A DNA stretch of 64,000 nucleotides, taken from NCBI RefSeq assembly GCF_000189555.1, contig NC_017276.1; one strand, written 5' to 3'. Both the position numbers and the translations under genes were made by a program. The notes beneath the pieces were generated by a model. That model was given only the letters and a program-made list of their open reading frames with translations. It did no database searches and was not told the DNA's origin. This stretch comes from Saccharolobus islandicus REY15A. Lineage in GTDB: Archaea > Thermoproteota > Thermoprotei_A > Sulfolobales > Sulfolobaceae. Below, piece by piece: positions 3,344-39,679 of this stretch (position 1 is the stretch's first letter; every line of letters starts with the position of its first letter).

Positions 3344-4318
3344 GTGAGTAAAATGGTATTGCTTCAGATTAGAAACTTAAACGTTTATTATAATACAATA
3401 ATAAGTTGGATTAAAGTATTAAGTGATGTAAATCTTGATGTAGAAAAAGGGGAAATAGTAGGAGTTGTTGGAGAAAGCGGTTCTGGGAAATCCACATTAG
3501 GTCACGCAATCTCCAGAATCCTACCTCCGAATGCGAGAATTCAAGGCGATATCATAATAGATGGAGTTAATTTAGCTAAGTTAAAAGACAATGAATTGCA
3601 GAAATATAGAGGAACATGGGTTTTCATGATATTTCAAAATCCATTAAACAGCTTGAATCCAGTAAAGAAGGTAGGTCATCAGCTATTAGAAGCTGTTAAA
3701 ATAAGGTATCAAAGAGATGGAAAGAAAGTAGAAGAAGAAAGTTTAATGAAAGATGTTATTGAAGTTCTCAAAGATTTAAGACTTCCAGATCCTTATTCCA
3801 TTATTGATCGTTACCCTCATCAACTCTCAGGTGGACAGGTTCAAAGAATAGTTATTTCAATGGCTTTATTACTAAAGCCCAAATTGCTCATAGCTGATGA
3901 ACCAACATCTGCATTGGACGTTACAATACAAGCGCAAGTGGTTAATCTATTTAAACAATTAAATAAAGAAATAAATACAAGCATCATCTTTATAACCCAT
4001 GATATTTCCTTAGCTTACGTAGTTTCGGATAGAATAGTAGTAATGTATGCTGGAAGAATTATGGAGGATGGAAAAGTTGAAGAAGTCTTAAAATCGCCAA
4101 TGCACCCATATACACAAGGGTTAGTGGCAAGTATACCAACTGGAGATAAAAATCAAAAGTTAACTGCAATTCCAGGTAATCCTCCATCGTTTTTTGCATT
4201 ACCTACTGGATGTAAGTTTAGTAATAGATGCAGTAAAGTTTTTGATGTTTGTAGGAAGAAAGAGCCCAGTATTATTGAGAAAAATGGAAGAAAAATAAGG
4301 TGTTGGTTATATGAGTGA
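3344..4318 (+). CDS. dppD: Peptide ABC transporter ATPase (DppD); start may be ATG 3353
   Basis: Walker A GESGSGKS, LSGGQ, LIADEPT, HPYT..L, C-terminal Cys cluster. Confidence 0.93.
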   Translation: MSKMVLLQIRNLNVYYNTIISWIKVLSDVNLDVEKGEIVGVVGESGSGKSTLGHAISRILPPNARIQGDIIIDGVNLAKLKDNELQKYRGTWVFMIFQNPLNSLNPVKKVGHQLLEAVKIRYQRDGKKVEEESLMKDVIEVLKDLRLPDPYSIIDRYPHQLSGGQVQRIVISMALLLKPKLLIADEPTSALDVTIQAQVVNLFKQLNKEINTSIIFITHDISLAYVVSDRIVVMYAGRIMEDGKVEEVLKSPMHPYTQGLVASIPTGDKNQKLTAIPGNPPSFFALPTGCKFSNRCSKVFDVCRKKEPSIIEKNGRKIRCWLYE

Positions 4319-6195: not shown

Positions 6196-7089
6196 TTAAG
6201 TAGATATTCCAGGAACTGGTATAGAAAGATCAATCTCCCTAGAATCCCTTAGCATTTTTACATTAACTTCTGAACCAACCATCTCTTCCAGTATTGCTAG
6301 TAAATCTATAGGAGATTTAACTTCTTGGTTATTGACTTTTAATATAATGTCACCTCGTCTTATGCCATATTTATAGGCACTTCCATTTGGATCTATGTTC
6401 ATTACAAGTAAACCACTTTGTTTCCTTACTCCCAGATACGTCGCTAATGCTTTGTTTAACTTTATTACTCCAACTCCTATATAAGGTCTTATATATCTGC
6501 CAAACTTCATGACGTTTTTTACGAAGCTATCAATAAGTTTAGACGGTATTGCAAAACCTATATTCTGAGCTTCTCTTATCATGGCAGTAACAGTACCCAC
6601 GACCTCACCTTTGGTATTTATAAGAGGCCCTCCACTATTGCCAGGGTTAACGGCGGCATCTGTTTGAATCACATATATAGGAAGACCATTAGGTGTCATT
6701 ATAGCCCTTTCTTCACTGCTGATTATTCCCATGCTCACACTGTATAAACCCAAAGGATTTCCCACTGCTAATACTACCTCTCCAGTTTTGTATTCCTTAG
6801 CAAATTTCAAACTAGGCAAGTTTAGTGTAGTGCTCAACATTGCTAAATCATGATAGGGATTTATGGCAACTACTTGCGCTTCCTCTCTGAATCCATCTTC
6901 AGATATTACTACTATCTCTTCAGAATTTGATATAACGTGATAAGATGTTATTAGAACATTTTTCCCTATAGAGTAGCCGGATCCTATACCTTCAGCAACT
7001 TGAGGCATAAAAAACTGGTCTAGAGCAATCTGCTTCGTTATTATGGTGACCACTGATGGAGTTACTTTTTCTACTAAATCCTCATACAT
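6196..7089 (-). CDS. htrA: HtrA/DegP-like serine protease with one PDZ domain
   Basis: Triad TSYHV / HDLA / GNSGGPL; GIRRGDIILKVN PDZ; ATG 7089 has TATAAATA at about -24 to -30. Confidence 0.9.
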   Translation of the reverse strand: MYEDLVEKVTPSVVTIITKQIALDQFFMPQVAEGIGSGYSIGKNVLITSYHVISNSEEIVVISEDGFREEAQVVAINPYHDLAMLSTTLNLPSLKFAKEYKTGEVVLAVGNPLGLYSVSMGIISSEERAIMTPNGLPIYVIQTDAAVNPGNSGGPLINTKGEVVGTVTAMIREAQNIGFAIPSKLIDSFVKNVMKFGRYIRPYIGVGVIKLNKALATYLGVRKQSGLLVMNIDPNGSAYKYGIRRGDIILKVNNQEVKSPIDLLAILEEMVGSEVNVKMLRDSREIDLSIPVPGIST

Positions 7090-36163: not shown

Positions 36164-36712
36164 ATGTTGGAAAATAGTCTAAAAAAGAAATTAGGCTATT
36201 TCATAAATTATAGTGATATAGAATATGAAGTCCTTTCCCAATATTATATGTTAGAGTTGAGAATGCCCAGCAATGGAAAATTAGGTCAATTTCTGCATGA
36301 ATATTTGCAAGAATATCTAATAAATGGTATTAACAGAATTAATGAGAAATATCTTCCATTTTACTATAATTTGAATAAAGCTCTAGAGCTTCTTTCAGGG
36401 ATAGTTGATGAGAGGAAATTATACTATTGTGATAAGAAAATAGAGAAAATAGGAAAAGTTAAATTAATTGGTCAAGCTGATATTTGCTCTGACGACTTAG
36501 TGATAGAAATAAAAAGTAAACCAGAACTTAAAAAGGTCGACTTAATGCAAGCACTTATATACACTTATTTGTACGAGAGAGATGTAATACTTTTTATGTA
36601 TGGAATATATACCGGGGAATATACTATAATAAGACTACCTTTTAGTGAAAGAAATATAAACTCCTTATTCGAAGGTCTCAAAAAGATAAGTGAAAGAGAA
36701 GAAATATTGTGA
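36164..36712 (+). CDS. Stand-alone PD-(D/E)XK nuclease, Cas4/AddB-like
   Basis: GQFLHE, LIGQAD, VIEIKS, QALIY motifs. Confidence 0.7.
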   Translation: MLENSLKKKLGYFINYSDIEYEVLSQYYMLELRMPSNGKLGQFLHEYLQEYLINGINRINEKYLPFYYNLNKALELLSGIVDERKLYYCDKKIEKIGKVKLIGQADICSDDLVIEIKSKPELKKVDLMQALIYTYLYERDVILFMYGIYTGEYTIIRLPFSERNINSLFEGLKKISEREEIL

Positions 36713-36770: not shown

Positions 36771-37538
36771 ATGGACTCAATAGATAAGGGAATATTAAAG
36801 ATACTTCTAAAAGATGCTAGAACACCACAGAGAAGAATTGCAATGCTGCTAGGCATATCTCCACCAGCAGTAAGTTACAGAATGGAGAAGTTGTTTGGGG
36901 ATATAATCAAAAGATTTACAATTTACGTTAATCCAAATTTCCTAGGCAGATATCATGGTTATGTAGCCTTTAACAATTTATACGATTGGGATGGAGATTA
37001 CATAGCCAAAATCGAGTGTCTAGAAGAGACTAACGTTTATGAAATTGACTCCAAGAGTAGAGTTGAACTTGATGAAAAAATACGAAAAATGAGCGAGAAG
37101 TTGGGAGAACCAAAAATGATATATATACCAAATCAGATGCCTTATAGCCCCTCTAAGTTTGACTTGAAAGTAGTAAGCATACTTAAAGAGAAACCCCTAA
37201 TAAAACCAATTGAACTTGCAGAAGAATTAGGAGTGTCGTCTAAAACGATCAGAAGACATCTAAGATATTTGTATAGCAAAAAATTTATCAGATTGATCCC
37301 TATTATAGATTTAAATAAGGCTGAAATATCTATATTTGCAGTATTTACATCAAGACTAGAAGAGGGGAAAAAATTCTTTGCAAAGTACGCTTTCACTGAA
37401 ATAGAGGATGACAAGGCTGGAATATTTGTAAATGTAGTCGATAGTATGGATGAAGCTAGAGACCTTGCATTAAAGTTTAAGAGAGAATATGACAAAGATG
37501 CAGAAATAATGATAACAACAAAATATGAATTTTTATAA
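36771..37538 (+). CDS. Lrp/AsnC-like regulator with two HTH domains
   Basis: DSIDKGILKIL..DAR..IA..LGIS and DLKVVSIL...ELAEELGVSSKTIRRHL. Confidence 0.85.
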   Translation: MDSIDKGILKILLKDARTPQRRIAMLLGISPPAVSYRMEKLFGDIIKRFTIYVNPNFLGRYHGYVAFNNLYDWDGDYIAKIECLEETNVYEIDSKSRVELDEKIRKMSEKLGEPKMIYIPNQMPYSPSKFDLKVVSILKEKPLIKPIELAEELGVSSKTIRRHLRYLYSKKFIRLIPIIDLNKAEISIFAVFTSRLEEGKKFFAKYAFTEIEDDKAGIFVNVVDSMDEARDLALKFKREYDKDAEIMITTKYEFL

Positions 37539-37543
37539 AATTG

Positions 37544-37742
37544 TATTTGTTATAGTATCTTGTCTTCTTTCTCTGTCTACTCTTCAATGCCTTAAACTCC
37601 CTAATTCTAGCCAACGATTCTTTCACATCACTAACTCCCCTTAACATCTCAGCCAAACCCCTCTCACCAATATAGTTCAACCAAGCCACAATATGCCCTT
37701 CCTCAAGATGCCATTCAACACAAGCTGGATCTTCTTTTCCTA
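37544..37742 (-). repeat. 199-bp direct repeat copy 1 (orphan 3' fragment of the 38816..39100 gene)
   Basis: Identical by eye to 38817..39015; lacks the 5' end and the stop codon. Confidence 0.92.
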
Positions 37743-37923
37743 ATTATTACAAAAGGTAATGATAGATCAACTTGATGCGTTTAGGCTTATTTTCTACTCA
37801 GAAAACTGAAGCAAAGGTATATAGTACAGAGACACCTTTATTAGGAAAAAGTTAGATTTTAAATTTAAATTGGTACTGTAAGACATTTTATACGGATAAA
37901 GTTATATCTTTATTTTACTGAAA

Positions 37924-38310
37924 TCATTCTATAGGTATAAATTCAACATCATAATCTTTTGCCGTTCTTTCTGCAAACTCGTGATCCGATGTGACAACTG
38001 TTCCCCCAATCATCTCTGCTGTAGCGACGAGAAAAGAATCCCCTAGAGATAGATTATATTTTAATCTTATTTTTGAAGCTATTTCCGCAAGCGTCTTATC
38101 AATTTCCACAAGGTTAATGAAGGTCAAGAGATAGTTCAACTTGACACCCGAAGCCTTAAAGCCAAATTTCCTTGCATAATGATATGCGAATTCTGAAAGA
38201 TTTACGGCGTTAATGAACTTCTCGTCATTATTTAATAGATACTTCTTGACATTAGGCGAACCGGAGAAGAATTGAAATATAATATTAGCATCAAGGATGT
38301 ACTTTCGCAC
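37924..38310 (-). CDS. vapC: VapC PIN-domain toxin
   Basis: ILDANII, NLSEF, SLGDSFLVATA, VTSDHEF. Confidence 0.92.
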   Translation of the reverse strand: MRKYILDANIIFQFFSGSPNVKKYLLNNDEKFINAVNLSEFAYHYARKFGFKASGVKLNYLLTFINLVEIDKTLAEIASKIRLKYNLSLGDSFLVATAEMIGGTVVTSDHEFAERTAKDYDVEFIPIE

Positions 38311-38530
38311 GTTCAGTTTCCCTTTCTTTAATATGTTCCTTAGCTAGCTCTTCCAAACCTTTTCCTCTATCTCTTCCAAATAATTCCTCTGGTGACTTCT
38401 TTGGTAATATGTGAATCCCATATTCATCACTGTAAATGATCACTTCATCCCCCTCTTTAATGTTAAACTTTTCCCTTATTTCCTTTGGGATAACCACTAT
38501 TCCCTTTTTGTGTACCTTTGTGACCATCAT
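38291..38530 (-). CDS. vapB: AbrB/SpoVT-type VapB antitoxin
   Basis: KVHKKGIVVIPKEIREKFNIKEGDEV. Confidence 0.92.
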   Translation of the reverse strand: MMVTKVHKKGIVVIPKEIREKFNIKEGDEVIIYSDEYGIHILPKKSPEELFGRDRGKGLEELAKEHIKERETERAKVHP

Positions 38531-38537
38531 AAATAAT

Positions 38538-38567
38538 AGTTTAACTCAATAGCTATAAAGTTTAACT
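38538..38567. promoter_or_regulatory. Two AGTT-N-AACT palindromes flanking the vapB TATA box (putative operator)
   Basis: AGTTTAACT at 38538-38546 and 38559-38567, 21 bp apart. Confidence 0.55.
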
Positions 38568-38815
38568 TCTTAATATTAGAGCGGAGAATCCCATAACCCA
38601 TATTTTACAATCAATTTTAGATGTAATTTAAGGATAATCTCCAATTAATAATCTTTTTCTTTTCTAGTCTTAATTCCTTACCATTGAAAGTTTAGCCTTT
38701 TTAAGGTAAAGATGAATGCTTAAGATTTTTAGATTTTAATTCAAGTTTTTCATTATGGCCCTGAGGCCATATCCAAGTAAAAAAGCTGGACGTTCCACTA
38801 ACCGTGGAAAATGGA

Positions 38816-39100
38816 CTATTTGTTATAGTATCTTGTCTTCTTTCTCTGTCTACTCTTCAATGCCTTAAACTCCCTAATTCTAGCCAACGATTCTTTCACA
38901 TCACTAACTCCCCTTAACATCTCAGCCAAACCCCTCTCACCAATATAGTTCAACCAAGCCACAATATGCCCTTCCTCAAGATGCCATTCAACACAAGCTG
39001 GATCTTCTTTTCCTAGTCTCTCGATTTCCTTCTCCAACTCATTCACATCATGAGCTATTCCTACTGTTCTGTTATATGACTTAAAATAGAATGGTTCCAT
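38816..39100 (-). CDS. Small single-domain DUF5752-like protein
   Basis: PFYF..G.A..V.EL...I...V.WH...GH...WL; TTATAAA about 26-32 nt upstream. Confidence 0.7.
   Translation of the reverse strand: MEPFYFKSYNRTVGIAHDVNELEKEIERLGKEDPACVEWHLEEGHIVAWLNYIGERGLAEMLRGVSDVKESLARIREFKALKSRQRKKTRYYNK
38817..39015 (-). repeat. 199-bp direct repeat copy 2
   Basis: Offset of 1273 bp from copy 1. Confidence 0.92.
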
Positions 39101-39327
39101 GTAGCATAGATTCTCTCAGAAAGAGTTTATAAGGACTTTTGCGTAATACCAAAGAGATTATATGAAGGGCTAGAGGTGGTTTTAAAACAAGGGAAAACTT
39201 CATTCTACTAGCCAGAGCCGTTGCCAACAGTTTCCGATAAACCACGAAATTTATGCACTTTATACGTAAAGATTTCTTAGAAATCTTACCACCAGATGTG
39301 GATGGATTTTCCAGAATGATAAGATTT

Positions 39328-39480
39328 CATAAGATGTGCGGATTTACTTATCTGACAGATGAGTAGGGTTATCCCGCTAGATAGATGGAGAAGGGTGAAT
39401 GGGTTTTCCCGTGACTTCGGTGAAGCCCAAGGGCTGAGAGTTGGATATGAGTTCATGAAAATTTAATGAAGCCCAAACCC
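39328..39480 (+). pseudogene. Probable 3' remnant of an IS605-family tnpB (omegaRNA/right-end region)
   Basis: Broken frame KMCG...VIPL...NGFSRDFGEAQGLRVGYEFMKI then ATGAAGCCCAAACCCC, resembling recalled Sulfolobales OrfB tails. Confidence 0.5.
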
Positions 39481-39679
39481 CATACTTAGAAAATACCTAA
39501 ACGTCTTTTAGAGTTCTCCTCATTTGGCTAACTCTATTATAATTCGATAAAGACCTCTATCATTAATTGGGATCGTAATAGAGAATCTTCGTTAATTTAA
39601 GTAACTTTTAAGGACTTAGTGGATTCTTTCTCCTTAGAACTTGGGATTTACTTTTGAAGAAAATATTATAGGAAACATA

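Follow-up and report, generated by a model that had tools for sequence, protein, structure and literature searches.

The window analysed here is a stretch of 64,000 nucleotides (nt) from Saccharolobus islandicus REY15A (contig NC_017276.1), in which a cassette with a vapB-vapC toxin-antitoxin (TA) pair lies between two identical direct repeats. One of these repeats forms the 3' part of an intact gene for a protein of 94 amino acids (aa), and the other is a truncated fragment of the same gene. Our data point, with a probability of about 0.8, to an old and fixed insertion-duplication of vapBC with gene-converted flanking repeats, and not to a new mobile element. An earlier note on this DNA had proposed a recent mini-island or a TA switch. 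Perfect identity of the repeats was there taken as a sign of youth, which turned out to be a misreading.

Age and concerted evolution of the duplicated locus

The repeat pair (37544-37742 and 38817-39015) had a length of 199 nt, 100% identity and a start-to-start spacing of 1273 nt. As it was the sole direct repeat of at least 45 nt across the 64-kb window, chance could be excluded. The minus strand carried every gene of the unit, the order 94-aa gene, spacer, copy 2 running from right to left in window coordinates. Copy 1 extended from codon 29 of the 94-aa gene to two bases into its TAG stop. A gap of 5 nt separated copy 2 from the stop codon of a convergent Lrp-like gene, and here it holds the spot occupied by the gene 3' end in empty-site species. 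The components of the locus are listed below.

38816-39100, minus strand: intact 94-aa gene, from the list of open reading frames (ORFs)
38817-39015, minus strand: repeat copy 1 (R1), gene positions 86-284, the 3' two-thirds of the intact 94-aa gene
37743-38816, minus strand: spacer between the repeats, 1074 nt
38291-38530, minus strand: vapB, 79 aa, AbrB/MazE-type (PF04014, E=5e-17; TIGR01439, E=6e-17)
37924-38310, minus strand: vapC, 128 aa, PIN domain (PF01850, E=6.5e-21)
37743-37923, minus strand: non-coding cassette tail from the vapC stop to copy 2, 181 nt, closing with in-frame TAA TAA abutting copy 2
37544-37742, minus strand: repeat copy 2 (R2), 5'-truncated fragment of the 94-aa gene
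37477-37689, minus strand: read-through ORF in copy 2, 70 aa, GTG start, running antisense into the Lrp-like gene
36771-37538, plus strand: convergent Lrp/AsnC-type regulator gene, 255 aa, two helix-turn-helix (HTH) domains and an Lrp/AsnC-type N-terminus; anchor of the ancestral empty site

The structural description given in the earlier note was confirmed in its main lines. This concerned the repeats of 199 bp around vapB-vapC beside an intact 94-aa gene, the layout of an insertion that duplicates a gene 3' end and leaves the gene intact, and the absence of any integrase or transposase. Neither of the latter was found among the flanking genes out to about 6 kb in both directions, and vapB and vapC were the only genes between the repeats. 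The note had also stated that recombination between the repeats would leave the gene intact; this holds in terms of structure, the product being the exact arrangement of outgroup species. No tRNA gene was detected by a scan of the 64-kb window, so that a tRNA-targeted integration can be dismissed, and no Rfam family was found in the window at gathering thresholds.

Loci of further genomes were retrieved by exact-protein look-ups, and a contig scan with the Lrp-like protein gave one useful locus (L013). The S. islandicus genomes were from Kamchatka (M.14.25, M.16.4 and several other M.16.x strains), North America (L.S.2.15, L.D.8.5, Y.G.57.14 and Y.N.15.51) and Iceland (REY15A and LAL14/1). The order gene, cassette, fragment, regulator was found with identical junctions in every S. 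islandicus genome examined and in two Joint Genome Institute (JGI) hot-spring metagenome contigs. In S. solfataricus vapBC was intact, and the second copy, also of 199 nt, spanned gene positions 86-284 as in S. islandicus. The second copy of S. shibatae and Sulfolobus sp. E5-1-F had an internal deletion of about 93 nt, leaving an 80-nt block (gene positions 94-173) and a 19-nt tail, and its flanks could be aligned with the S. islandicus and S. solfataricus ones. The cassette tail was homologous up to the junction in S. islandicus, S. solfataricus and S. shibatae. A 15-nt match in E5-1-F had been considered as an independent or rearranged duplication; this candidate was rejected after multi-species alignment, the motif being the diverged tail of copy 2 past the deletion of about 93 nt common with S. 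shibatae.

Empty sites, in which the gene is convergent with the regulator gene and neither cassette nor second copy is present, were found in S. tengchongensis, Sulfolobus sp. A20 and a Saccharolobus metagenome-assembled genome, the gap between the two genes being 37, 16 and 28 nt, respectively. In a maximum-likelihood tree of two neighbouring genes, the four occupied species grouped together as a single clade (support 100/100) that excluded the three empty-site taxa. The simplest history for an occupied four-species clade with empty outgroups is one insertion on the clade stem. Cassette identity between S. islandicus and S. solfataricus was 86.9%, which corresponds to a divergence of about 13%. 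As judged from these comparisons, the insertion was shown to be old, fixed and of single origin. The term "recent" used in the earlier note could not be maintained, given junctions common to all four species of this clade and the divergence of the cassette. The same note had named a fixed arrangement with diverged repeats in all relatives as contrary to its proposal: fixation was indeed found in the occupied clade, and repeat divergence was not, because gene conversion homogenises the copies.

Comparison of the repeats within and between genomes supported this last statement. The 199-nt repeat showed 22-25 differences out of 199 between S. islandicus and S. solfataricus, and 0 between the copies within either genome. 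Had both copies evolved independently since the common ancestor, they should differ at least as much as the species do. Within S. islandicus, substitutions G131A (Kamchatka) and A167G (North America) were each present in both copies. In copy 1, copy-specific single nucleotide polymorphisms (SNPs) were restricted to repeat positions 180 and 196, and in copy 2 to position 194, all of them at most 20 nt from the 3' border of homology. In three of the four S. shibatae genomes, the 80-nt block was identical to the strain's own gene; the 19-nt tail past the deletion had diverged from the strain's own gene in both S. shibatae and E5-1-F. Variable sites within S. islandicus amounted to 1.5% in copy 2, a level like that of coding DNA, versus 5.5% in the adjacent non-coding cassette tail. 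Flanks and cassette diverged by 3-6% within S. islandicus and by 13% between species. On the strength of these alignments, the repeats were shown to evolve in concert by gene conversion, weaker at the homology borders, and their identity reflects a steady state and not youth.

A substitution bias was observed in the S. solfataricus repeat (locus L019, gene positions 86-270, corresponding to 4086-4270), with 11 AT-to-GC changes versus 1 GC-to-AT change. GC content at third codon positions (GC3) reached 71% at gene positions 174-255, in a genome of about 35% GC, and the unduplicated 5' part had 3 versus 2 changes and no bias. It is possible that this represents a signature of GC-biased gene conversion, although the numbers are small and the bias was absent in S. 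islandicus.

The fate of vapBC differed among lineages. S. solfataricus and the majority of S. islandicus genomes had an intact pair. A 1-nt insertion at window position ~38074 had frameshifted vapC of strain M.14.25 and of some M.16 strains (loci L001, L003 and L032), resulting in ORFs of 85 aa and 48 aa, and other M.16 strains (L033 and L034) had an intact vapC. Both vapB and vapC were pseudogenised in several S. shibatae genomes, vapBC was almost deleted in S. shibatae B12, and both E5-1-F and one S. shibatae strain lacked it. Since both repeat copies persisted in every lineage with dead or lost vapBC, loss has proceeded by internal decay or deletion and not by recombination between the repeats. 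The surveyed alleles show that pop-out through the repeats is not the prevailing route, even where nothing should select against it. These observations fit with a live vapBC being retained by benefit or addiction and a dead vapBC being eroded.

Patterns specific for the empty site and for a circle or tandem junction were validated in silico. No empty-site allele was found in any occupied-clade genome examined. Neither an empty site nor a circle or tandem junction was present in the fetched loci or in the JGI metagenome contigs, a weak negative result since assemblers break at 199-nt repeats; the two JGI contigs mentioned above carry the occupied allele. Searches of the cassette DNA against plasmid and phage collections, and of the longer S. 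solfataricus spacer against plasmids, gave no match.

Proposed origin and competing explanations

The following history can be proposed. About 1 kb with the vapBC operon would have entered the 3' part of the 94-aa gene in an ancestor common to S. islandicus, S. solfataricus, S. shibatae and E5-1-F. This target gene is arranged tail-to-tail with the Lrp-like regulator gene, and the event would have duplicated 199 nt. The upstream copy completes the functional 94-aa gene, and the downstream copy would have been left as a truncated fragment beside the regulator gene. Recurrent non-reciprocal homologous recombination, i.e. gene conversion, has since then erased each new mutation or passed it to the other repeat. 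Crossover or deletion products restoring the empty site have remained unfixed in every sampled lineage, possibly because deletion is rare relative to conversion, because the loss of a live vapBC is counter-selected, or for both reasons. The first of these could follow from a strong bias of homologous recombination in Sulfolobales to short non-crossover tracts, as reported from work on S. acidocaldarius.

As to the insertion itself, the origin may most simply be sought in a circular DNA with the 199-nt segment and the cargo, which would have been integrated by a single crossover (Campbell-type). The structure of the locus matches the product of such an event: an insert between direct repeats equal to one contiguous target segment, with one complete and one truncated gene copy. 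Several points nevertheless weigh against this account or parts of it. No donor with both the gene segment and vapBC was found, and nothing in the locus records how the insertion took place. An identical structure would result if the DNA had entered at a staggered break and a long piece of the target had been duplicated, and the origin can only be inferred, since homogenisation of the copies has erased any donor/host differences. The base following copy 2 gives TAC, which is not a stop codon, so that one boundary base must have changed if copy 2 represents the original gene end. Finally, the branching order inside the occupied clade was only moderately supported and few relatives of S. shibatae and E5-1-F were sampled, which makes a single origin of the 93-nt deletion uncertain.

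Perfect direct repeats, whose recombination would restore an intact empty site resembling that of the outgroups, could also be attributed to a recent recombinase-free mini-island, or to an excisable or amplifiable TA switch cycling between the integrated form and a 1273-bp circle. Homology in the order of 199 nt is enough for recombination in Sulfolobales. However, the insertion is common to four species and its cassette has diverged by 13%; occupied-clade genomes lacked an empty-site allele and metagenome contigs lacked empty, circle and tandem junctions; and dead cassettes were lost by internal deletion with both repeats kept. This explanation appears very improbable, and the last two sets of observations leave the switch suggested in the earlier note unsupported. 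Maintenance of the structure by TA addiction would complement an old insertion with converted repeats. Conversion and deletion would both occur, but cells deleting a live vapBC would be killed or slowed by surviving VapC, so that outcomes without deletion would alone be passed on. The presence of an intact vapBC with conserved PIN acidic residues in S. solfataricus and in the majority of S. islandicus genomes, together with the erosion of the cassette where it has been inactivated (S. shibatae and E5-1-F), is in agreement with such an effect. On the other hand, S. shibatae and E5-1-F, with a dead or absent vapBC, have still not lost the structure through the repeats, M.14.25 and some M.16 strains keep it in full despite the vapC frameshift, and post-segregational killing by this chromosomal pair is only postulated. 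A contribution of addiction, which the data allow but do not demand, can be regarded as possible, if tentative.

Another explanation can be based on copy 2 itself, which might be selected for a function of its own. It could act as the 3' untranslated region (UTR) of the Lrp-like gene, antisense to the 94-aa mRNA and preserving in trans the tail-to-tail overlap that preceded the insertion, or it could encode the 70-aa ORF. Copy 2 starts 5 nt past the Lrp-like stop, with no run of at least 5 T after that stop within the copy, and the ancestral gene gap measures 16-37 nt. It is far less variable than neighbouring non-coding DNA, and at least 80 nt survive in every occupied species, even those without vapBC. 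Gene conversion alone nevertheless suffices to account for this conservation, synonymous and non-synonymous changes in copy 2 follow copy 1 exactly, and a stretch of about 93 nt is missing from it in S. shibatae and E5-1-F. The 70-aa ORF has neither an upstream start nor a promoter, and two stop codons stand before it. A separate function of copy 2 is unlikely on this balance. The particular case of a 3' UTR providing a 199-nt trans-acting antisense RNA against the 94-aa mRNA, kept matched by conversion, must be considered quite unlikely; if true, copy 2 and the 94-aa gene would form a self-updating antisense pair. As for the 70-aa ORF, it is annotated as a gene in some genomes. It has no in-frame start upstream, stop codons precede copy 2, and the copy is readable only from an internal GTG; it is probably not a real gene. 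An assembly artefact, which the earlier note had named as grounds for refutation, might be suspected for an exact 199-nt repeat exceeding many short-read lengths. The same structure, with strain-specific SNPs and indels, was however present in >20 independently assembled genomes from four species, which reduces this eventuality to a negligible one.

The cassette, the host gene and their surroundings

Gene vapB was directly upstream of vapC, in the same orientation and with a 20-nt overlap. The PIN match of VapC (PF01850) spanned residues 4-114, and its acidic residues D7, E40, D91 and D109 were invariant in an alignment with homologues down to 40% identity. By its domains, gene order and PIN residues, the pair can be assigned to the VapBC type II TA systems. 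The closest relatives outside the clade were from Metallosphaera (VapC identity 69-74%), in an unrelated context. Their homology was confined to the promoter and operon (about 640 nt), without flanking repeats and without the 94-aa gene. It began 38 nt upstream of vapB and so takes in the first of the following predicted signals.

38553-38560, minus strand: TATA-like box CTTTATAG, some 23-30 nt ahead of the start codon (ATG) of vapB
38779-38809, minus strand: hairpin and run of six T after the stop of the 94-aa gene, at the start of the spacer; hairpin at 38793-38809, TTCCAC-GGTTA-GTGGAA on the gene strand
38755-38770, minus strand: second hairpin, ATGGCC-TCAG-GGCCAT on the gene strand, S. islandicus-specific and with no functional evidence

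The box CTTTATAG corresponds to the predicted promoter of a vapBC transcript that is probably leaderless. Two strains displayed insertions in this region. In LAL14/1 (locus L008, 6545-6770; window ~38553-38560), a 210-bp element resembling a MITE (miniature inverted-repeat transposable element) was found; it ends in inverted repeats (GAGTGTGGACAACAATTT... / ...AAAATTGTTGACCGCACTC), and the duplicated target sequence, ATAGCTAT, is 8 bp long. The insertion point of this MITE-like element falls precisely within the TATA-like box that precedes vapB, so that LAL14/1 probably has a disrupted vapBC promoter. In Y.N.15.51 (locus L007, ~6439-6458; window ~38647-38666), a strain-specific insertion of 20 nt upstream of vapB partly repeated neighbouring sequence (AAGAAAAAGATTATTAATT).

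The two hairpins placed by the earlier note near 38755 and 38793 were recovered, though they are weak: the hairpin fold was just slightly better than in shuffled sequences (z-score -2.0). Neither was conserved beyond S. islandicus; the T-run and the first ~50 nt of the spacer were kept in all four occupied species. The T-run between the hairpins is likely to be the terminator of the 94-aa gene, oligo-T transcription termination being established in archaea. A scan for bacterial-type terminators, of little relevance for an archaeon, found none.

The 94-aa protein had no match in Pfam, NCBIfam or PHROG. Its 42 homologues were all from Sulfolobaceae, with additional ones on plasmids pKEF9 and pAH1, and no relative of the family was found in viral contigs. 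A confident AlphaFold (AF2) model (pLDDT 90.5), built from 29 homologues, consisted of a beta-hairpin and a helical bundle, with a long C-terminal helix of basic character. Sequence-profile and fold searches against the PDB gave nothing significant. The protein is small, highly conserved, specific to Sulfolobaceae and without a characterised family; in the model, its basic tail hints at nucleic-acid binding. The plasmid homologues of the gene, with about 72% identity (conjugative plasmid pKEF9, locus L017, NC_006422.1 28451-28750; plasmid pAH1, locus L018, NC_011299.1 26809-27099), were about 2-3 kb from plrA and an integrase gene, and vapBC was not adjacent to them.

Some neighbouring features may also be mentioned. 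The 182-aa protein encoded upstream of the Lrp-like gene (36164-36712, plus strand) had a weak Cas4-like match (TIGR00372, E=0.0026), and the Lrp-like protein (36771-37538) had a weak Csa3/cas_HTH match (TIGR01884, E=1.6e-6), both below cut-off; every species examined kept this gene pair in synteny. A stretch of 579 nt (39101-39679) that separates the 94-aa gene from an M61 peptidase gene was ORF-free and GC-richer (up to 41%). The same position was occupied by insertion sequence (IS) elements in S. solfataricus and E5-1-F, and by an osmC gene in S. tengchongensis. Neither an osmC remnant (tblastn with the S. tengchongensis osmC) nor an Rfam match was found in the window.

Significance and comparison with known systems

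The locus is a fresh instance of known processes, namely gene conversion without deletion in a hyperthermophilic archaeon. It calls for caution in genome scans, perfect direct repeats around a cargo being no proof of a recent or mobile insertion: the present repeats go back at least to the separation of four Saccharolobus/Sulfolobus species. It also offers a natural case of archaeal recombination, in which a repeat of 199 nt (80 nt in one lineage) was homogenised through about 12% divergence and deletion was never fixed. This puts constraints on how frequent non-crossover conversion is in Saccharolobus relative to crossover or deletion. In strains that are well suited to genetics, the locus is tractable for studies on the rate, direction and minimal homology of conversion, as well as on a possible self-protection of vapBC against pop-out.

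Integrase-bearing elements are known to insert in gene 3' ends and to bring a substitute for the displaced end, such as e14 and phage 21 in the 3' end of E. coli icd, or archaeal elements in tRNA genes. In them, as in this locus, the cargo separates an intact gene from a displaced partial copy of its 3' end. In contrast, no integrase is present here, the repeat greatly exceeds typical att sites in length, the clade shows no presence/absence polymorphism and the repeats are homogenised instead of diverging independently. Single-crossover "pop-in" integration of plasmids, followed by segregation, is used in Sulfolobus genetics, and this Campbell-type event likewise duplicates the target segment as direct repeats around the insert, with one complete and one truncated copy. 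Unlike the laboratory procedure, the present event was natural and has persisted across speciation without the expected "pop-out", and no circular donor is known.

VapBC pairs are abundant in Sulfolobales, and the one described here resembles them in its domains, gene order, 20-nt overlap, PIN acidic residues and compact promoter-plus-operon module. In strain LAL14/1, vapBC loci were reported to be flanked by degenerate IS copies, with one exception (PMC3718332). The present locus differs from these in having no IS remnants and in being bordered by a duplicated piece of a neighbouring gene.

With regard to the repeats, the closest likeness is with the concerted evolution of bacterial tufA/tufB genes and rRNA operons. 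These have in common identical copies within a genome, differing orthologues, lineage substitutions present in both copies and weaker homogenisation at the edges. The palindromes of the human Y chromosome provide a further parallel of concerted evolution by gene conversion (PMC3723533). In all of these cases the setting differs from that of the vapBC locus, where one partner is a short non-functional gene fragment and the copies are direct repeats about 1 kb apart around a TA pair, in a hyperthermophilic archaeon.

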